Under the pieces are notes generated by a model. It was given only the letters and a program-made list of their open reading frames with translations. It did not search any database and was not told where the DNA came from. A DNA stretch of 63,773 nucleotides, counting the filler, from Klebsormidium nitens (lineage: Eukaryota > Plantae > Klebsormidiophyceae), in the NCBI GenBank assembly GCA_000708835.1. It is 8 parts of 8 records of this genome, joined end to end, with 100 filler letters (N's around TTAATTAATTAA, not from the genome) between each part and the next. Parts side by side here need not be neighbours in the genome. Positions count along the whole stretch, not along the records: positions 4,035 to 20,430 come from DF238013.1; 7 more parts are not named here. One strand, written 5' to 3'. The position numbers were made by a program, and so were the translations under genes. This document shows, piece by piece, positions 4,035 through 20,430 of this stretch. Within the stretch, counting starts at the first letter, position 1. Each line of letters opens with the position of its first letter.

Positions 4035-4193
4035 GTGCTCCCACTCGTAGGCGTCCTGATCCAGCTGGATCTCCTCCACGGTCCAGAAATTGGCGACCGC
4101 CTTCTTGTAGAACGATCAGGTCTTGGGGTATTTGATGGGGAAGGTGCAGTACCTGTGAGGATCCGTCTCGAGGAGGGGTTCTCGTTCTGCCAT
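4035..4193 (-). pseudogene. RNR2: Ribonucleotide reductase small subunit (R2), 5' fragment with a premature stop
   Basis: Translates MAEREPLLETDPHRYCTFPIKYPKT*SFYKKAVANFWTVEEIQLDQDAYEWEH, the typical R2 N-terminus; TGA at 4116-4118 falls where a conserved Trp is expected; runs into a gap. Confidence 0.85.
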
Positions 4194-4302
4194 GTCTCAG
4201 AATGAAGCCCTCGTACCTTACAGTCTGTCCAGAATAAAATGGCACACGACGAATCTGCGTCTGAAGGTCTTCAGCAAGAGCTTAGAAGCATCCGAATGCC
4301 AC

Positions 4303-4535
4303 ATCATAGCGGAAGCATCCGAAAGCAAGTATTCAAAGAATGCGTCCGAAAACAATTTCGGGTACTGACGGCTATAGCCACATCGCAACAGAGACATCCG
4401 AAAGTCAGTATCCGAAAAATGCGTCCGAAAACATTTTCGGGTACTGACGGCTACAGCCACATCACAGCGGAAGCGCCCGAAAGCAAGTATCCCTGAAACA
4501 TTTTCGGACGCCGAAGGCTACGGGTATAACATCTT
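4303..4535 (+). repeat. About 3 tandem ~75-bp subterminal repeats rich in RYRTCCGAA motifs
   Basis: aaaca(a/t)tttcgggtactgacggcta(t/c)agccacatc at about 4351 and 4428, with a degenerate third copy at about 4496. Confidence 0.75.
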
Positions 4536-4862
4536 GGAGCGAAAGGCGGTCATCTCTCCAGAAAACAGGTCCTGACCGCCAGAGATGGAAGTCTACATGA
4601 GAGAACGGGTAAAAACTCTTCCTTACAGTCTGTCCAGAATACAAAGACACACCTGGAATCTCTGATTCTCGAGAGTATCGTGGAACGTCTCGGACGCCAG
4701 CGTCCGAAACCCCAGCTTTAGAACCTTCCAAATCGCCACGTCGTAACGACAGGTGTCCGAAAAGAGACAGCCCAGAAGCATCTCCCATTCGGACGACCGT
4801 CAGAGAGAAATCTCGCTCGGAGTATATATACCACAAAACTTCCTTTCTCACGACATTCACAG

Positions 4863-6761
4863 ATGGACGATGGGACGGATGGCTTCGAGGGGACGAAGAG
4901 GAAGCGCCCAGACATCGCTCTACGAATCCAACAGCGAAAGGGCAAAGAGACCTCCGTGGTACAGACGGGATAGAAGGCCCTCTGTCAGGACCTCGGGATC
5001 AGAGACCGGATCGAAGAGATCATCCCAGAAGTGAGTCGCATCCGAATCGAGACCTGCCTCCTGCTCAACCTGCACTTCATCCGCCTTCTGGAGGAAGGGA
5101 AGCCCATTCCCGTCATCGACCAGAACTTGGTCGGACGTGCGATGCAGTGCACATATGCAAAGAAAGCACAAGCGGACGCGGAACTCCAAGAGACATTCGA
5201 CCACCACTACCTACCTCTCTGCCCCAACCGTCCGATCAACAACTGCCTCCCTCGCATCACCAACGTACTCCTGGACCTGCGCAACCAGCTCCTCAGCAAC
5301 ATCAAGAATCACGTCGCGGTCCTCTTCCAGTCACGGCACCGGGCCTTCATGAAGCTCCTCCTCAGAGAAGCAGCCCCGGGCGTGCCTTTCTTCGAGGAAG
5401 CGGACGAGGATCTGGAGTCGTGCACCCGGCTGCTGACGACCGCCACCTTGTGGCGCCCGAACGAGAGCGTCCAAGAGCTGCTACCGGAGTATCCTCGCAT
5501 CTACGGAAGGATCCCAGAAGCTGCGATCGAGTGCCTACAAGATCTGGTCGACTCAGTCAGGCCGGAAGTCGGGCCGCTGCCTGCGGCGTCCCAGAGCAGA
5601 CCTCACCTCTACGTGCCCTGGATGAGGATCATCAGCGAGGAGTCCTCGGACCGACAGCTGCGATCATTCTCCCTCGTGCCTCACGCCTCCTTCTCTGCAC
5701 CTTTCATCGCTATCACTCCTACAACGTGGCCCGAGCTGCAACCAAAGAGCGGCAAGAGAAAGGCTCCGGGAGAGCTCCGCGATGCTTTTCCCTCCATCGG
5801 ACGGCTGGAGAGCGGTGGGAAGACCTTCGCAGACCGGATCACCACGGACGGAGTGTCCGCGAGCGTGTATTTCCCGGTGGAGAAGAGGACGCCCCCTCCG
5901 GAGGACAGAATGGTCCACATCCACCCCAAACAGCGCGTGGTGGGATTAGACCCAGGAAAGCATCCTGACTTCCTCACCGGCATCGCCGTGACCGGCGACT
6001 GGGATGGCATCTCGCATCAGGAGGAGGTCATCGGCCTGGGGACCCGGGACTTCTACCACCGAGCGGGATTCAAGAATCGGACGTTCCTCATGCACGCCTG
6101 GATGTCCAGAGACCTGGATGTGGCAGCCTTCAACAAGGATGCTCCTTCGGGGAACACCGTGAGTCTGGAGAAGTTCGGGAAGAGGGTGACCTTCGTCTCT
6201 GCGAACCTGTACTGTCTGGTACGCTTCCACACCGCGAGGAGGGTCCGAAAGCTGAGACGGCGAGTGACGATCAAGAAACAGATCGAGGTGGACAGAGCCT
6301 GCAAGAAAATCACGGCAGGGAAGAAAACCGTGGTGGCTTTCGGAGCAGCACAGGTGGATGCAGGCAGGACCAAGAGGCAGTGTGGGCCATGCGAGTCGGT
6401 GAAGAGACGACTCAGCAGCCACCACAAGGCGACGGTGGTCTTGATTGACGAGTTTAGGACGAGCCAGGTGTGCAGCACGTGCCACTCGGACGTCAACAAG
6501 TTCGCGGTGCTCAAGAGGCAGCGGGTGATGGAGGATGGACTCCCGACGGTGACCGAAGTAGGGCGTCGCGAGGACGAGGACGGAGGAGGGAGGACGAGCT
6601 ACAAGACGTGCCACAACGTGCGAGCGTGTACTAACCCGCTCTGTCGCATGGTGTGGAATAGAGACGTCAACGCAGCTCGTAGCATAGCTTGGATTTGTAT
6701 GAGCATAGCGAGAGGCGAGGGCAGGCCGGCAGAGTTCACGAGAGCAGGAGTCTGGGGCTGA
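4863..6761 (+). pseudogene. Fanzor (Fanzor1/TnpB-like RNA-guided RuvC nuclease), ~632 codons, with one in-frame TAG at 4971-4973
   Basis: RuvC-I VVGLDPG, RuvC-II LIDEFRTS, Zn finger CSTC...CTNPLC and RuvC-III WNRDVNAA. The upstream in-frame ATG at 4863 gives MDDGTDGFEGTKRKRP...KETSVVQTG*KALC, which aligns with the family-B N-terminus (ECTVVKTSLNSFC). Confidence 0.9.
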
Positions 6762-6897
6762 CAGATAGATAGTTCAAAGACATAGCTGCCTAGAAACGAG
6801 TTCATCTAGGCACCTCGGTGAGAACCCGAGATACGGCTGAGTACTATGGCGAGTGTGCCATTTTACTCTGAACAGACTGTATACGCGGTTTCGGACG
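6762..6897 (+). ncRNA. Predicted omegaRNA of Fanzor A (scaffold to the element end plus flank-derived guide TACGCGGTTTCGGACG); boundaries approximate
   Basis: Hairpins TGCCTAGA/TCTAGGCA (6787-6812), CTCGG/CCGAG (6814-6830) and ATGGC/GCCAT (6846-6861) lie between the stop and the right end; the last 85 nt are conserved in the mini-element at 17586-17670. Confidence 0.7.
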
Positions 6898-6968
6898 CGA
6901 GCCGACCGTTTGGACGCCCCGCGAGAACAAGTCTGTGGAAGCCCTTTCGGACGCCACTTTCGGGCGTC

Positions 6969-8048
6969 TCAGGCTTCGCCGTGGTAGATGTCGTCTACCA
7001 ACTGATAGTCCACCTTTTTCACTCTATATCTCCTCTTGAATTCCTCGATGAGTCTCTCCCGCAAGTACTTCTCGTTGGCGCTCGTCATGTGCCCGAAATC
7101 CTTGTGCGTCGTCCGGATCAATTGCGCGAATTCCAAGCGAGAGTCTCCCTTTCGGGCGGCGAAGCCAAAATCGATCAATAGAACTCGTCCGATATATTTC
7201 GTGCCCGGTCTGTACTTGAATGCTATGTTCTCCCAGTGGAGATCGCCGTGAGCGAGTCGCTTCTTCTGCATCTTGTCGATGAATGATATGAGGACTTTGA
7301 GCATGACGTCTAGCTCCCACCTCTTGCGATCCCGTCGCAGCCACGATGACAGCGTGGAATCCACCTGTTGCATGAGGACGACCGACACTTTCTTCTGCTT
7401 ACGGCCGTGCTTGATCTCGTCGAGCTCGAGTCCGAACGCTCGCGGCGCCAACCCATTGCGCCAGAATTCGTTCTGCATGTCCATCTCCACTCTATCTCGT
7501 GCTCTGTCGAGTTTCTTGGAGATCTTTGCGACGCGCCTCTGGCCGGTCTTCCTGTTTCGGACGAGGATCACCGACCCACTCGCCCCCTCGCCCAAGTGCT
7601 TCACGAAAGCCCACTTCTTCCAAAGGTTCATCGCAAAGCACCTCTCCGCCGCCAGGCACGGGGCCATGCTGCCCGTACCTTTCTGACCGTCCATAGCTTT
7701 CTTCCATTCGGTGACGGAGAACCCTCCCTCGAATAAGTCGCGCCCCATCTTCTGAGCACCGTCGACCCCGGCTTCGCACAGATTCTGCTTAACGCCGAGC
7801 TCCGCGAGTCCCTCTCCCGTGATCCAGTTCACCTTCTTCCCAGTCTTAAGCACGGCCGGCTTCAAGGCTTTCCTTGGTCTCCTCTCGCGCCGGGTCCTCC
7901 GTCTCCTCGGGACTTCGAGTCTCTTACGGTGCACTCTACAGTATCGATAGTCGCCCGACCCGCAGGCCGCCTTGTTCTTGCACCGCGCACCGTTCTTGGT
8001 CGGAGCTATGCAGCGTCCGCACGCCTTTTTCTTACGAGCTCGCGCCAT
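6969..8048 (-). CDS. Viral-type Ser/Thr protein kinase with an N-terminal Cys/His motif and an Arg-rich tract
   Basis: LGEGASGSV, VAK, HGDLHWENI and LIDFGFA kinase motifs; N-terminal CIAPTKNGARC...CRVH; intronless. Confidence 0.85.
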   Translation of the reverse strand: MARARKKKACGRCIAPTKNGARCKNKAACGSGDYRYCRVHRKRLEVPRRRRTRRERRPRKALKPAVLKTGKKVNWITGEGLAELGVKQNLCEAGVDGAQKMGRDLFEGGFSVTEWKKAMDGQKGTGSMAPCLAAERCFAMNLWKKWAFVKHLGEGASGSVILVRNRKTGQRRVAKISKKLDRARDRVEMDMQNEFWRNGLAPRAFGLELDEIKHGRKQKKVSVVLMQQVDSTLSSWLRRDRKRWELDVMLKVLISFIDKMQKKRLAHGDLHWENIAFKYRPGTKYIGRVLLIDFGFAARKGDSRLEFAQLIRTTHKDFGHMTSANEKYLRERLIEEFKRRYRVKKVDYQLVDDIYHGEA

Positions 8049-8787: not shown

Positions 8788-11124
8788 CTATTGTACGTAA
8801 ACCCATCTATAGCCGGCTGCCAGGATACTCGTGTCGCGTAGTGCTTTTCTCAAACTGCTGTTGTTTCTCAAGCCGTGCTGCCGAACAGCCTCCAACACGG
8901 ATGAATATGTACCGCTGATCTGGCCGGTCATGACGTCTATCCTGTGAACCGGACGAGTGCGGTCTCTATTCTGAGCCTGCTCAGCCGTCGTCGCGAATCG
9001 CAGGTTTTCTAGGCGATTATTCGACGGCTGCCGATCGATGTGATCGACGCTCGTGTGGTGGTCACTCGGAGGACTCCCGAGGAACGTGTACGCCACCAGC
9101 CCGTGCACCGGTAAATTTCTACCACCTCTTATTCCCACATACATGTAGGAGTTTATACGCTTTCCGTACCAGCGCCTGCCAGTTGCACTCTGCACGCGGC
9201 CCGATGTACTGACGAAAATGTTCCTCAACGCAGTGCCCTTGTATACGGCGGGCTTCCAGATTTCTCCGTCCATTGTAGCCTGTTGTCTGAGGTAGTCCTG
9301 ATCGATCTGAAAACGAAAGCCACTCTGCATCCCGCCCCCGCTTTTCATGATTCGCTTCAGTTTGTCCTCCCCCACTCCAGTGGCTCTAGCAGCTTCTGCG
9401 ATGCTCGTGTATACCGAAGTGAGACCCGTGGAAACGTCCTCCGTTGACACGGGGATGGATGTGTGGGACGTCCAACCTTTCTTGGCGTCTGGGTTGTCTA
9501 AAGCAGTCTTCGCCACGTGGTCGGCCACGCTCAGCTCTTGGAGGTTTTGCCAAGAGTCATCCGGTTCGGTGCCCTCGGGATGAGGTACGATGTGGTCGCA
9601 GACCATACCGGGCCCGATTGGACGTCCCAGCTTCACTTCCAGGTTGAAACGGTGCCGTTGATAATACTTCGTTTCGCCCACCCCGACCACCCAGTATTTA
9701 CAGNNNNNNNNNNNNNNNNNNNNNNNNNNNNNNNNNNNNNNNNNNNNNNNNNNNNNNNNNNNNNNNNNNNNNNNNNNNNNNNNNNNNNNNNNNNNNNNNN
9801 NNNNNNNNNNNNNNNNNNNNNNNNNNNNNNNNNNNNNNNNNNNNNNNNNNNNNNNNNNNNNNNNNNNNNNNNNNNNNNNNNNNNNNNNNNNNNNNNNNNN
9901 NNNNNNNNNNNNNNNNNNNNNNNNNNNNNNNNNNNNNNNNNNNNNNNNNNNNNNNNNNNNNNNNNNNNNNNNNNNNNNNNNNNNNNNNNNNNNNNNNNNN
10001 NNNNNNNNNNNNNNNNNNNNNNNNNNNNNNNNNNNNNNNNNNNNNNNNNNNNNNNNNNNNNNNNNNNNNNNNNNNNNNNNNNNNNNNNNNNNNNNNNNNN
10101 NNNNNNNNNNNNNNNNNNNNNNNNNNNNNNNNNNNNNNNNNNNNNNNNNNNNNNNNNNNNNNNNNNNNNNNNNNNNNNNNNNNNNNNNNNNNNNNNNNNN
10201 NNNNNNNNNNNNNNNNNNNNNNNNNNNNNNNNNNNNNNNNNNNNNNNNNNNNNNNNNNNNNNNNNNNNNNNNNNNNNNNNNNNNNNNNNNNNNNNNNNNN
10301 NNNNNNNNNNNNNNNNNNNNNNNNNNNNNNNNNNNNNNNNNNNNNNNNNNNNNNNNNNNNNNNNNNNNNNNNNNNNNNNNNNNNNNNNNNNNNNNNNNNN
10401 NNNNNNNNNNNNNNNNNNNNNNNNNNNNNNNNNNNNNNNNNNNNNNNNNNNNNNNNNNNNNNNNNNNNNNNNNNNNNNNNNNNNNNNNNNNNNNNNNNNN
10501 NNNNNNNNNNNNNNNNNNNNNNNNNNNNNNNNNNNNNNNNNNNNNNNNNNNNNNNNNNNNNNNNNNNNNNNNNNNNNNNNNNNNNTCTGAACAGACTGTA
10601 TTGTGACGGCAGCCTTTGAGGACCTGTCCTGCCTTGGCCGAGAAAACCTGCCCATCCGGTCGGCCATAGTAATCCGTCATCACCGGATGCGGCTTCCAGT
10701 CTTCGGACGGGTCAGGATGAAACAGTGCCGCTTGCGGGGGACGATCCAGAAGCCTCTTCACGCGTCGTTCTTCCTTTGACACTTCACGCAAGTTAGCCCA
10801 AGAGTCGTCGGGCTCCTCCTCGCGAGCATCTCTCTTCTCCACTATCCTGTCGCAGATCATCCCGGGTCCGAGCAGTCGACCGAGCTTGCATTCTAGCACG
10901 AGGTTGTGCCTCTGATAGCTGACGGTTTTGTTTCCATGTGCTATAATCAAGACCCAATCGATCGTTTTCTGCGGAGAACCTTTCACACACCGCCCGGATT
11001 TTGCCGAATAGATCTTTCCATCCTCGCGCGAATAGAGGTGTGTGAAAGTGGGATGAGACTTCCACCCCTCGTCCTCTGGGGGTGCCTTCAGTTCCCTCCC
11101 TTCGAGTTTGCGCTTACCCAGCAT
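8788..11124 (-). pseudogene. Multi-domain NUMOD4/HNH homing endonuclease (~478 aa when repaired), interrupted by a family-A element
   Basis: Repeated W(K)xHP...YxRxDG..S modules, VDHIDRQPSNNRLENLRFAT (HNH) and HTH-like SIAEAARATG. Removing 9701-10598 and one TA restores LKGCRHNKYWVV in frame. Confidence 0.85.
9701..10598 (+). mobile_element. Family-A TIR element, mostly unassembled (N gap)
   Basis: The left gap edge reads TTA|CAG and the right edge reads TCTGAACAGACTG|TA, matching both family-A ends with a TA duplication; length depends on the gap estimate. Confidence 0.8.
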
Positions 11125-11213
11125 TATGTACAGACTCGTAATATATCTATCGTGCATCGACCGCGTGCCCTATATAGCCGCAGGAACCTGCCTGTACCAC
11201 TCGAGCCGCGCGC

Positions 11214-17544: not shown

Positions 17545-17585
17545 GGTGTAATTTAAGCTCTGATTTTTTTGCTATGCGGAGACTA

Positions 17586-17766
17586 CAGTCTGTTCAGAGT
17601 AAAATGGCACACTCGCCACAGTACTCGGCCGTATCTCGGATTCTCACCGAGATGCCTAGATGAACTCGTTGTTCGGACGCTACCTGATGCCACGTGGTTG
17701 CTACGTGGTGCCACGTGTTGAAGTCGTTCTCGGACGCTAGTGTGCCATTTTATTCTGAATAAACTG
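17586..17766 (-). mobile_element. Family-A mini-element (181 bp) retaining the 3' 85 nt of the omegaRNA scaffold
   Basis: TIRs at both ends; TA duplications at 17584-85 and 17767-68; 17586-17670 is the reverse complement of 6795-6879 with 4 substitutions. Confidence 0.92.
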
Positions 17767-17772
17767 TAAAGG

Positions 17773-18991
17773 ATGTCCAGCCCTATCCCCTATCTCTAGC
17801 CCGATCGAGAGGTTGTACAAACTGTACGAAGCGGCAGAGTACCTCTATAATAAAGGCATAGGTCACGATCGGAGAGGCGATGAAGCTACGGCGCAAACAT
17901 ACTACGAACACGTATCAACTCTCGTAGACGAAGGATTGTTGCACGCCTCTGCATTGACAGCAATTCAGATGAGTCAAGTGCACTCGAAGATCGAAGATAT
18001 GAAAAGGTGGAAGGTATATCTGAAGAAGATATTGAGACGTTCCGATCCGACTCCGAAGGGCAACCTCGTACGCTTCGAAGAGCAGATCATAGGAGAGATC
18101 ATGCAAGCAAGAGATGATACCACGTTCAAGGATATCGGAGGTATGAAGCAAGTCAAGATCGCTCTCACCGAGATGGTCATATTGCCATCCGTTCGGAGCG
18201 ACATCTACACCGGGCTCAGGACTCCCCCGAGAGGCCTTCTCCTGTTTGGTCCCCCCGGTAACGGAAAGACGTACATCGCACGCGCCGTCGCGAACGAAGT
18301 CAAGGCGACCTTCTTCTCCATAAGTGCGACCTCGTTCGCGTCCTCTCTAGTAGGCGATGCGGAGAATCTCCTTCGAGCTCTGTTTACGGTGGCTCGGAAG
18401 AAACAACCTTCTCTCATATTGATAGACGAGATAGACAGCATCCTCACGAAGAGGTGCGAGAACGACCAGGAGTATACCCGCAAGCTGAAGACCGAGTTCT
18501 TCGTTCAATTCGACGGGGTGGCGACCGACAAGAGCGACAGGGTCACGGTCATCGCGGCTACGAACCTGCCGCAGGAGCTGGACGACGCAGCCGTGCGACG
18601 ATTCGAAAAGAGGATCTACGTCGGCTTGCCGGATCTCTCGACGAGAAGGCAATTACTGGAAAAGCATCTGCAGCCAAACATTCCGAATCCTAGATCACGT
18701 AAACTACCGAACGAGCTGAATTCCAATCAAGTGCATGACATCGCCGCCCTTACGAAATGCTACTCCGCGTCCGATCTGAATTCACTGTGCAAAGAGGCAG
18801 CTATGATCCCTCTGAGAAATCAGAGAGAACATATCCTCGATATCCCCGTAGAGAAGATAGAAGCAGTGACCTTCAAAGACTTCAGAGAGGCAGCAAAGGT
18901 CATCAAACCCAGCGTCAAGAGAGAGAGCCTGGCGGCTCTCGAGAAGTGGAACGCCGACTTTGGATCCTTTCCCAACAAGGAGCTGGACTGA
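17773..18991 (+). pseudogene. Spastin/Vps4-like MIT-AAA ATPase, intronless, frameshifted at the 5' end by a 7-bp duplication
   Basis: LRTPPRGLLLFGPPGNGKT (Walker A, spastin-like), IDEID (Walker B) and AATNLPQELDDAAVRRF; removing one CCCTATC copy (17781-17794) joins ATG 17773 to the ORF. Confidence 0.85.
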
Positions 18992-19056: not shown

Positions 19057-19677
19057 ATGGATGCTCGTAAGGCAGAGAAGAATAGGGCCGAACTCTTGAT
19101 TGCAAAGGAAATCGCCAGGAAGCAAGAAGCCGCCAGGCAACGGGAAAGGAACGAGGCTGCCCGTCGGATGACGGAGAGGCTCCATCAGGCTGCAGAAGCA
19201 AGACGCAGGCGGGCCGCGGAAGAGGCACGTGCCCAGGCAGAAGCTGAGAGAAGACGAGCCGAGGAGGAGTATGCAGAGAGCGTTAGACAGCGGGCCGAGG
19301 AGTTTGCACGTGCCTATGCAGAAAATGCTGAGCGACGACGACGGGCGGAGGAGGCCGCGCGTGCCCAGGCAGAAGCCGACCGACCGGTCCTCACCGCTTA
19401 GGATCGTCAATGGAAGGCGGAGTTTGACGAGTTGGTCAAAGAAGCTGTGCTAAAGGGCATCCGAAGGGGCTGGCATACTGCTAATGCAGAGATAGGACGT
19501 ACGGGAGTGTCTCCTATTATCCCACTCACTCGGTCGATCCTGAAGAAGCTGCTTCTTGTCTACCATCCAGACAAATCCAAGAACCGCATCGCATTGTACC
19601 CTCCTGGGATCACGGAAGGTAATGTGCTTAGCATATCAAAGGCATTGACGGCTCGCTTACAAAGACCAAATGCCTGA
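19057..19677 (+). pseudogene. Coiled-coil protein with a J-domain-like HPDK segment, split by one in-frame TAG (19399-19401)
   Basis: An A/E/R-rich coiled coil continues in frame past the stop into PLTRSILKKLLLVYHPDK. Confidence 0.65.
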
Positions 19678-19720
19678 ATTCCATAGACTCACATTTTCAT
19701 CTCCAATAGTATACGTCCAC

Positions 19721-20035
19721 ATGTCATCCAGAGGCCTACGGGAACTCATCGAAGCTCACCCGGACAGGGTGCCTCTCATGATCTCAGGAGACGCGATGGA
19801 ACACGAGAAGAAGCTGTTGGTCCCAAAGTCTACCACACCCAGCCAGCTTTTGCTCATACTCAGGAATCGACGTATGTTGAGACCCACGGAGAAACGAGAA
19901 GCACAGTTTCTGATGGTAGGTGGTATCCTGCCGAGCTCGCATCAGACGCTTGGAGAACTGCGAGCGGCAACTTGTGCTCCAGATGAGCCCCTCAAGGCGA
20001 CCGTATGCAGGGAGAGCACGTTCGGCGGGCCGTGA
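19721..20035 (+). CDS. ATG8: Divergent ATG8/LC3-like ubiquitin-fold protein
   Basis: HPDRVPLMI, KKLLVP, FLMVGGILPSS and C-terminal ESTFG-GP with the lipidation Gly; intronless. Confidence 0.75.
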   Translation: MSSRGLRELIEAHPDRVPLMISGDAMEHEKKLLVPKSTTPSQLLLILRNRRMLRPTEKREAQFLMVGGILPSSHQTLGELRAATCAPDEPLKATVCRESTFGGP

Positions 20036-20430
20036 TCATGCTGGGGTGAACATGAGGATCTTCGGTTTGCAATCATCGTTCCTGGTCACGAGCATCTTGA
20101 ACGCCTTCTGACCGTATTGATCCACTCCGTATTCCACGCCGATCGGCTTCTGCTTCGCCGCGTCCAAGAAGGTGTATGTTATGATCTTACCAAAGTTCTT
20201 TGGCGTACTCCAGCCAGCACCCACCAGCACCTTCTCCGCGAGACCGTCCGGCAGATCCCATTGCTGGAGCTTACCCACCGAGATCGTCGTATCTGGTAAG
20301 CTTGTCATATAGCGTTTCCGTATGTAGTCATCGATCGCACTCCTGGCGGGCTCATTGAAACCCGGCTCCACAGACCAAGTGTCGCAGCGTGGAAGTACGG
20401 GTTGTGAAGCAGAAGCTTGGCTGGTTGTAA
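20036..20430 (-). CDS. Hypothetical protein, 5' end in a gap
   Basis: Reading frame is open from the gap edge to the stop; no recognised domain. Confidence 0.45.

Follow-up and report, generated by a model that had tools for sequence, protein, structure and literature searches.

The window analyzed here is a stretch of 63,773 nucleotides, filler included, from the streptophyte alga Klebsormidium nitens (assembly GCA_000708835.1), and it consists of eight parts joined end to end. One of these parts, which extends from position 4035 to position 20430 and derives from record DF238013.1, carries a Fanzor1 gene situated between terminal inverted repeats that are bordered by TA dinucleotides. Note that this piece contains an internal gap of N's from 9704 to 10585. 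The element is probably a non-autonomous transposon of the IS630/Tc1/mariner type, the only cargo of which is the Fanzor1 gene and the scaffold of its omegaRNA. It resides in giant-virus-like DNA, and its nearest named relatives are K. nitens sequences. Indeed, the closest named proteins are two hypothetical proteins from K. nitens that show 89-90% identity to the Fanzor of the window, whereas the other relatives, at 55-82% identity, are mostly from Joint Genome Institute (JGI) metagenome samples. The related loci that were fetched for comparison are designated by L-numbers: L001 and L002 (the latter with two copies, L002a and L002b) are from K. nitens, and the metagenomic loci are from JGI samples 3300060284 and 3300060285.

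The boundaries of the element are delineated by two arms located with a repeat finder at 4219-4247 and 6853-6881. Each arm contains 29 nucleotides including the TA, and 27 of the 29 positions (93%) are complementary. Without the TA, the repeats are 27 nucleotides in length and start with CAGT, as the preliminary description of this DNA had recognized, and they match at 25 of the 27 positions. The outer left repeat lies on the plus strand from 4221 to 4247, and the right repeat lies on the minus strand from 6853 to 6879. The adjoining TA dinucleotides are found at 4219-4220 and 6880-6881, respectively. An 18-nucleotide end pattern gave six matches in the window versus 0.05 expected from shuffled sequences, and thus the ends cannot be attributed to chance. 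Every other end copy located, either in the window or in 13 related loci, is likewise adjoined by a TA, so that all copies recovered through their repeats carry TA flanks.

The left end of the element is composite, and neither its second repeat nor the tandem repeats between the two left repeats had been noticed in the preliminary description. An outer perfect repeat, in which the AAAATGGCAC core retained by most ends of the family is unchanged, is followed by 378 bp of unique DNA (4248-4625) and then by an inner, degenerate repeat (4626-4652, plus strand, with its TA at 4624-4625) that has three mismatches in or next to the AAAATGGCAC core. It is at this inner repeat that all of the relatives begin; the K. 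nitens copies, for example, align with the window from 4626 onward and not from 4221. The extra segment itself (4248-4623, plus strand) is present in no relative and harbors 79-bp tandem repeats at 4298-4492, each of which contains GCGTCCGAAAAC. When compared with all of the fetched loci, the 378 bp between the left ends yielded self-matches only, as did the 87 bp to the right of the element. The outer end at 4221 adds, in total, 405 bp of unique, repeat-bearing sequence ahead of the inner end. Given that the relatives align from 4626 and that the intervening 378 bp are unmatched, the canonical element is defined as 4626-6879. It is 2254 bp in length, and eight Fanzor-only relatives range from 2161 to 2598 bp. 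In light of the degenerate inner end and the unchanged core of the outer end, the unit that a transposase could still recognize may be 4221-6879. The element had initially been called complete, a term that does not apply to a copy with a composite left end and, as described below, a reading frame interrupted at codon 37.

The origin of the two-left-end layout is a matter of speculation, and one scenario would be a nested insertion, after which two Fanzor bodies recombined. In the K. nitens element of L001 (9755-13209, 3455 bp), the last ~1.27 kb, which includes half of the Fanzor gene and the RNA region, is tandemly duplicated, and internal rearrangement thus does occur in this Fanzor family. 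A public K. nitens gene model of 864 amino acids apparently spans the L001 duplication.

An eight-nucleotide motif, GCGTCCGA, or its complement, TCGGACGC, recurs in and near these elements. Its positions in the window are 4342, 4421, 4504, 4690-4707, 6891, 6947, 17673, and 17730, and it is also observed at 4175-4359 of L002 and 9828-9845 of L001. Within the 5' regions of the K. nitens-type elements, the motif forms a palindrome and is also part of tandem repeats of 46 bp and 79 bp. In the window the palindrome, TCGGACGC-CA-GCGTCCGA at 4690-4707, falls in the 5' untranslated region of the Fanzor gene (4653-4862, plus strand). The motif is additionally found in the miniature copy described below and twice just beyond the right end of the element. 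In the metagenomic relatives, the 5' regions lack this motif.

The same piece of DNA contains other insertions of the family. One of these, at 9699-10600, has lost its interior in the N gap, and only 5 and 15 terminal bases survive, namely TACAG at 9699-9703 and a stretch terminating in ACAGACTGTA at 10600. This insertion splits a homing-endonuclease-like gene of the HNH_3/NUMOD1 type that has an internal repeat and extends from 8788 to 11157 on the minus strand. When the two flanks are joined via exactly one TA, a single continuous open reading frame results, and the internal repeat of the encoded protein carries on across the junction. If no TA or two TAs are left instead, everything downstream is shifted into stop-filled frames. 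Only the removal of the element together with exactly one TA restores the frame, which demonstrates that the TA is a true target-site duplication, in keeping with the duplication that had been claimed for the Fanzor element. Another insertion is a miniature derivative, 181 bp plus two TA flanks, at 17584-17768 on the minus strand. It is composed of both ends and the last ~85 nucleotides of the 3' RNA region, contains an 11-bp tandem repeat, and is positioned between two divergent genes, just upstream of an AAA/Vps4-like reading frame. The flanks of the 14 insertions employed in the flank analysis below, and of the gap-flanked insertion at 9699-10600, are unrelated to one another. Such differing flanks signify independent insertions and thus past mobility. 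Judged from sequence, the ends and the TA duplication are those of an IS630/Tc1/mariner-type transposon.

Relatives with the same ends and a transposase were identified in L045, L043, and L047. The ends of L045, both with a TA, enclose a 312-residue protein and an intact Fanzor of 615 residues (4940-8034). The 312-residue protein scores 104.7 bits against the NCBIfam IS630 model, for which the cut-off is 100. In L043 the layout is as in L045 with a frameshifted Fanzor, and the 93% identical copy of the 312-residue protein displays a Pfam DDE_3 domain (E = 2e-28) and an N-terminal helix-turn-helix domain. The transposase of L047 is ~60% identical to that of L045, and the match to its Fanzor is split over two frames. 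From the existence of same-ended relatives with an IS630-family DDE transposase, it follows that the copy in the window would be a non-autonomous derivative. The Fanzor-only element of L004 retains pieces of the transposase, namely its first 15 and its last ~81 codons, which lie between the left end of the element and the ATG of the Fanzor gene. On the basis of these remnants, the Fanzor-only copies look like internal-deletion derivatives of the two-gene element. The 181-bp miniature also looks like an internal-deletion derivative. A search of IMG/VR with the end repeat gave 33 matches, all of them single and with at least six mismatches in the 12 upstream bases, and these are considered unrelated. 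The same search of the JGI metagenome collection gave no matches, the samples of the relatives evidently lying outside that collection.

The Fanzor1 reading frame extends from 4863 to 6761 on the plus strand (632 codons followed by a TGA at 6759-6761), and an AT-rich TATATATA stretch is located ~35 nucleotides ahead of its ATG. It is the one Fanzor-type frame of the element, as stated in the preliminary description, which had overlooked that it is interrupted by a TAG at codon 37 (4971-4973). This is the sole interruption, and in all of the compared copies the corresponding codon is TGG, for Trp. The possibility of an in-frame intron over the TAG was rejected: the homologues are colinear through the site with a Trp, and the K. 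nitens Fanzor1 named KnFNuc reportedly lacks introns (Jiang et al. 2023, Sci Adv, PMC10530073). The K. nitens copies in L001, L002a, and L002b contain no internal stop. As evidence of selection, the ratio of nonsynonymous to synonymous divergence (dN/dS) lies within 0.15-0.32 for every pair compared, those among the K. nitens copies included (~0.18 for the K. nitens paralogues).

With regard to the protein, the 36 residues that precede the stop contain a sequence, KRKRPD, resembling a nuclear localization signal. A similar signal, RKRPD, is observed near the N-terminus in an alignment with six complete or nearly complete homologues (608-640 residues), and the motifs GLDPGK, DEFRTS-CxxC, CxxxxC, and NRD are conserved across that alignment. 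The copy in the window has GLDPGK, IDEFRTSQVCSTC, CTNPLC, and WNRDVNA, each conserved in all of the homologues, and both the D/E/D residues of the RuvC domain and the CxxC...CxxxxC zinc finger are intact. This C-terminal arrangement, with RuvC I, II, and III and an inserted zinc finger, is that of Fanzor1, to which the protein is assigned by its sequence; Bao and Jurka (2013) gave the Fanzor1 motif as D ... [TS][TS]-x-x-C4 zinc finger ... RD. The 595-residue portion beyond the TAG matches the Pfam Cas12f1-like TNB domain with an E-value of 3e-5 and a score of 24.5 bits, which is just below the gathering cut-off of 26.3 bits (the L043 copy scores 40 bits). A phmmer search against proteins of solved structure retrieved SpuFz1 (8GKH; 8.5e-5) and PpFz1 (9CF0; 1.7e-3), and with a family profile the values were 3.7e-8 over 384 positions, with the RuvC motifs aligned, and 1.1e-4, respectively. 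These two Fanzor1 proteins were the only matches to solved structures at E ≤ 0.01, the next having an E-value of ~0.6. The RuvC-I, RuvC-II, and RuvC-III motifs and the zinc finger all align with those of SpuFz1 and PpFz1, whereas the overall similarity is only distant, as indicated by the profile E-value for SpuFz1. An AlphaFold2 model, built from only nine aligned sequences, was too poor for a fold comparison (mean predicted local distance difference test score of 45.9, predicted template modeling score of 0.33). A protein-profile search of IMG/VR yielded distant Fanzors of 22-27% identity only, and these were not used.

Two additional copies are of note. In L003, hairpins 1 and 2 of the RNA region described below come after an intact Fanzor of 640 residues (6001-8010), and there is no inverted end on either side; it may represent an immobilized or domesticated copy in a giant-virus-like contig. 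In L002 (4456-7702), the public K. nitens model fuses the L002a Fanzor to a neighboring protein kinase, resulting in a protein of 1040 amino acids. This fusion over the right end seems to be an artefact of annotation.

The region from the stop codon to the TA beside the right end (6762-6881) is predicted to fold into three hairpins with an energy of -36.4 kcal/mol (z = -2.76), and none of 200 shuffled sequences was as stable. Three hairpins at this location had also been noted in the preliminary description, and they are all encoded on the plus strand. Hairpin 1 (6787-6812) exists in three sequence versions in the family; five of its eight pairs are changed on both sides, and the pairing is kept in most copies. 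Hairpin 2 (6814-6830), with CUCGG paired to CCGAG, shows changes from C-G to U-G across the copies, and in a MAFFT alignment L043 and L045 are one letter shorter on each of its arms. Hairpin 3 (6832-6881) is a compound structure. It contains an inner hairpin at 6839-6868 and a basal stem in which AUACGG is paired with the tip of the end plus the TA, and its 3' half, starting at 6853, is the right end itself.

When RNAalifold was applied to the MAFFT alignment, hairpins 1 and 3 went undetected owing to misalignment of the hairpin 1 variants, and per-sequence folds and pair counts were employed instead. When the 13 complete right ends linked to a Fanzor are folded one by one, the minimum-energy structure has the three-hairpin layout in 11; the exceptions are L002b and L042, in which the third region is paired in another way. 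Across the copies, 91.8% of the alignment cells form the pairs of the structure, as compared with 31-44% when the partners are slid by one to three columns. A covariance model of the region gives 57-125 bits for the right ends linked to a Fanzor, with the end-less L003 the lowest, and for the miniature copy (101.6 bits), versus at most 14.6 bits for the left ends. Structural conservation of the 3' segment is thus a property of the right ends and not of the left. Of the 39 nucleotides between hairpin 1 and the right end, 37 are identical in the window and L007, whereas four-fold sites are 50% identical. The folds, the pair counts, the covariance scores, and the identity over these 39 nucleotides support the assignment of the right end to a conserved, right-end-specific structured RNA region. 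A search of Rfam returned no match at E ≤ 1.

The constraint also extends into the gene. Between divergent subgroups, the identity of synonymous codons is ~0.5 over most of the gene and rises to 0.82-0.90 in alignment codons 571-615, which correspond to approximately 6609-6680 of the window (plus strand) and encode CHNVRACTNPLCRIVWNRDVNAAR. For this block RNAalifold predicts a local hairpin together with long-range pairs to the right-end region, and 96% of the cells hold the long-range pairs as compared with 23-47% when the partners are slid. The omegaRNA scaffold thus probably starts inside the Fanzor gene, with the block at 6609-6680 as its putative 5' part. The proposal that the inverted repeat doubles as the end of the scaffold is borne out to the extent that the structure is right-end-specific and that hairpin 3 overlaps the repeat; the scaffold is, however, probably not confined to the region 3' of the stop codon. 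The miniature copy possesses neither the constraint block nor the 5' arm of hairpin 1 and may therefore be without a complete scaffold.

An analysis of the flanks of 14 insertions, viewed in the orientation of the Fanzor gene, revealed that the base before the left TA is a T in ten cases and a C in the remaining four (binomial p = 3e-4). No mirror bias is evident on the right, where the corresponding position is an A in only 3 of 14. As a consequence of the T on the left, a vacant site would usually read TTA followed by the right flank. Such a bias is consistent with the suggestion, made in the preliminary description, that the element is maintained by RNA-guided cutting of empty sites, although homing itself is something that we infer.

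On the basis of these features, the following scheme can be envisioned. A transposase supplied in trans would bind the ends and cut and paste the element into TA sites, the TA being duplicated in the process. The omegaRNA would arise from a transcript that traverses the 3' part of the gene, all three hairpins, and the right end and then reads on into the flank; its scaffold would terminate in ...CUGUA, and its guide would derive from the flanking DNA. For the copy in the window, the putative guide would correspond to 6882-6901 (plus strand). The Fanzor protein and its omegaRNA would then recognize the unoccupied allele, in which the left flank, T, TA, and right flank present TTA plus target, and would cut it, and repair of the cut vacant allele would copy the element back in. 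An occupied site reads GTA before the target and would be spared. A coupling of this kind between the TTA motif of Fanzor and the TA target of the transposase, with vacant TTA sites cut and occupied GTA sites spared, would draw on the asymmetric T ahead of the left TA and on the predicted ...CUGUA terminus of the scaffold; it is put forward only tentatively and is regarded as rather doubtful.

The surroundings of the element have a viral character. The contigs of the relatives encode Pox_A22, PCNA, ribonucleotide reductase, UvrD, deoxynucleoside kinase, a DNA methylase, and HNH proteins, and for this reason they look like giant-virus DNA. Genes in the window include those for a protein kinase, a deoxynucleoside kinase, an AAA/Vps4-like ATPase (17813-18991), and an ATG8-like protein (19670-20035), as well as the start of a gene like that for the small subunit of ribonucleotide reductase beside the element. 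Both the ATPase and the ATG8-like frames are uninterrupted in this giant-virus-like stretch. The reductase-like gene start occupies 4035-4193 on the minus strand, 26 bp from the outer left end, and contains an in-frame TGA at 4116-4118. At the position of this TGA, the family has a conserved Trp, as in human RRM2. There are, accordingly, two G-to-A changes of TGG to a stop less than 900 bp apart, this one and that at codon 37 of the Fanzor gene, and the pair may reflect the decay of methylated endogenous viral DNA. K. nitens has been reported to contain giant-virus endogenizations in which the viral gene fraction is methylated.

Several points weigh against the interpretation of the element as a transposon that is mobilized in trans and maintained by its own RNA-guided nuclease. 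First, the frame is broken: the single change of TGG to TAG would leave the Fanzor1 gene of the window inactivated or at least N-terminally truncated, and this copy cannot yield a full-length protein. Second, the element encodes no transposase, as had been described correctly; a tblastn search found none in its entire piece of the window, nor in L001 or L002, and the transposase of the family is likewise absent from the K. nitens proteins in the database. The earlier proposal of mobilization in trans by a mariner/IS630 transposase thus stands with respect to class and non-autonomy, by virtue of the L045-type relatives and the remnants in L004, whereas a cognate transposase was not found in the K. 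nitens data examined. Third, the K. nitens-type copies are diverged, with a synonymous divergence (dS) of 0.23-0.37, and there is accordingly no sign of recent jumping in this genome. As to the RNA, hairpins 2 and 3 show only one-sided, wobble-type changes; the long-range pairing of the block in the reading frame has nearly invariant partners and no compensatory change; and the 3' half of hairpin 3 is also a transposase-binding end, the conservation of which is not assignable to the RNA alone. Finally, the T bias is derived from 14 sites and might instead stem from a preference of the transposase, KnFNuc may or may not belong to this exact family or locus, and eukaryotic Fanzors are not known to home, the natural role of these proteins having been called unknown in 2023 (PMC10530073).

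Some of these same points would be expected if the copy were a dead relic, that is, an immobile, decaying fossil in an endogenized giant-virus region, with neither a working nuclease of its own nor a transposase in the genome, and with conserved features that reflect only its past. This is a possibility to be taken seriously, even though it is considered the less likely one. The stop at codon 37, the TGA in the neighboring reductase-like gene, the degenerate inner left end, the failure to find a transposase in the window, in L001 and L002, or among the K. nitens database proteins, a dS of ~0.3 between copies, and the reported endogenizations with their methylated viral genes are all in accord with it. 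On the other hand, only one of the 632 codons carries a disabling change, no damage is seen in the outer left end, the right end, or the RNA region, and the K. nitens paralogues have intact reading frames with a dN/dS of ~0.18. A K. nitens Fanzor1 is, moreover, active in vitro, where it cleaves DNA in an RNA-guided and motif-dependent fashion (PMC10530073). With its ends and RNA region preserved, the copy in the window could be served in trans by the ~90% identical, intact K. nitens copies. It should also be kept in mind that the relic explanation addresses the present activity of one copy, not the identity of the element.

It is improbable that the Fanzor serves the virus first and foremost, whether as a weapon, for example in competition between co-infecting viruses, or as a domesticated gene, and that its ends are incidental. 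Such a role would fit with the presence of all of the relatives in giant-virus-like contigs, with L003, in which an intact Fanzor and hairpins 1 and 2 occur without ends, and with the packaging of Fanzor proteins in the virions of an endogenous giant virus of Chlamydomonas (10.1101/2024.09.03.611062). Most copies, however, keep both ends and TA flanks at unrelated sites, and the combination of autonomous versions, deletion derivatives, and a miniature copy is the usual signature of a transposon family. Slightly less probable still is the notion that the 3' hairpins are DNA-level features, such as a subterminal transposase-binding structure or a terminator of the Fanzor mRNA, rather than a guide scaffold. 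In its favor, the inverted end itself makes up the 3' half of hairpin 3, double compensatory changes are lacking in hairpins 2 and 3, and Rfam has no matching family. Against it, the structured region occurs at the right end only, the shape of hairpin 1 is kept through three unrelated sequences, the constraint extends into the reading frame, and, in K. nitens and for other Fanzors, the RNA that co-purifies with the protein comes from precisely this region and overlaps the end (PMC10530073).

The non-autonomous transposon with a Fanzor1 gene and its scaffold as cargo can be compared with several known systems. KnFNuc is present in five intron-less copies per genome, co-purifies with RNA from the 3' noncoding region adjoining its reading frame, prefers a TTA motif, produces focused nicks, and edits in human cells with an efficiency of up to 2% (PMC10530073). 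It is from the same organism as the closest named relatives of the window Fanzor, and it shares with the family described here the lack of introns, the multiple copies, and the 3' noncoding RNA; its TTA motif fits the T in the left flank plus the TA. In contrast to KnFNuc, the copy in the window has a premature stop. The main text of PMC10530073, furthermore, assigns KnFNuc to no transposon family and mentions no viral setting. The same study lists Mariner/Tc1 among the Fanzor-associated transposons and describes Fanzor RNA that overlaps the terminal inverted repeat.

In an endogenous giant virus of Chlamydomonas reinhardtii, three Fanzor1 families, A to C, were described in 2024, the full-length copies of which contain an IS630-Tc1-Mariner transposase. 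Also described there are copies that have only the Fanzor and a guide at the right end, non-autonomous copies devoid of genes, and fragments (10.1101/2024.09.03.611062). Compared by description, the series of transposase plus Fanzor1, Fanzor-only, and gene-less elements in a green-algal giant virus is like that reported here. The host in the present case, however, is a streptophyte rather than a chlorophyte, and the copies there are more than 99% identical, whereas dS here is ~0.3. Earlier still, Bao and Jurka (2013; PMC3627910) described PUl-4, with a Fanzor1 only, Mariner ends, and TA duplications, as well as PUl-1 and PGv-1, with a Mariner transposase and a Fanzor1, PGv-1 lying in an algal giant virus. 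Again by description, the element in the window corresponds to PUl-4 in all three respects. The hosts differ, and PUl-4, PUl-1, and PGv-1 were described before the RNA-guided function of Fanzor was known, with no analysis of an omegaRNA.

The homing proposed for the family would also follow the logic of bacterial TnpB. As summarized in PMC10690162 for IS200/IS605 elements, a guide RNA is transcribed from the right end into the flank, the vacant site is cut, the element is restored by recombination, and the TnpB motif is the insertion-site sequence. For the family considered here, that correspondence is one that we infer. Unlike in IS200/IS605 as portrayed there, the nuclease is partnered with a DDE transposase of the cut-and-paste type, which goes with inverted ends and a duplicated TA, and not with a Y1 (HUH-type) or serine TnpA. 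The miniature copy calls to mind the Submariner elements of Pandoravirus salinus, which, according to the abstract of that report, are Tc1/mariner-type miniature elements that have colonized a giant-virus genome (PMC4495683). The abstract mentions no Fanzor or guide-RNA module, whereas the miniature in the window keeps the 3' RNA region.

Fanzor1-only mariner elements (2013), a K. nitens Fanzor1 nuclease (2023), and algal-virus families with a transposase and a Fanzor (2024) are already known, and the element in the window is probably one of the K. nitens copies already counted. What is new here is modest: the series of autonomous, Fanzor-only, and miniature elements, the proof of the TA duplication from an empty site, the block of synonymous constraint, and the bias in the left flank. 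There is thus little that is new in kind, but the whole series is exemplified in one family, in giant-virus-like DNA linked to a streptophyte alga. If the coupling of TTA and TA is correct, natural sequences of this family would provide evidence that Fanzor homes in an RNA-guided manner, and the family would be a simple system in which to test it; a homing Fanzor, whether eukaryotic or viral, would operate beside a cut-and-paste DDE transposase inside giant-virus genomes. The apparent start of the scaffold within the reading frame, together with a left-flank base that fits TTA, could guide work on the role that Fanzor plays for its transposon.

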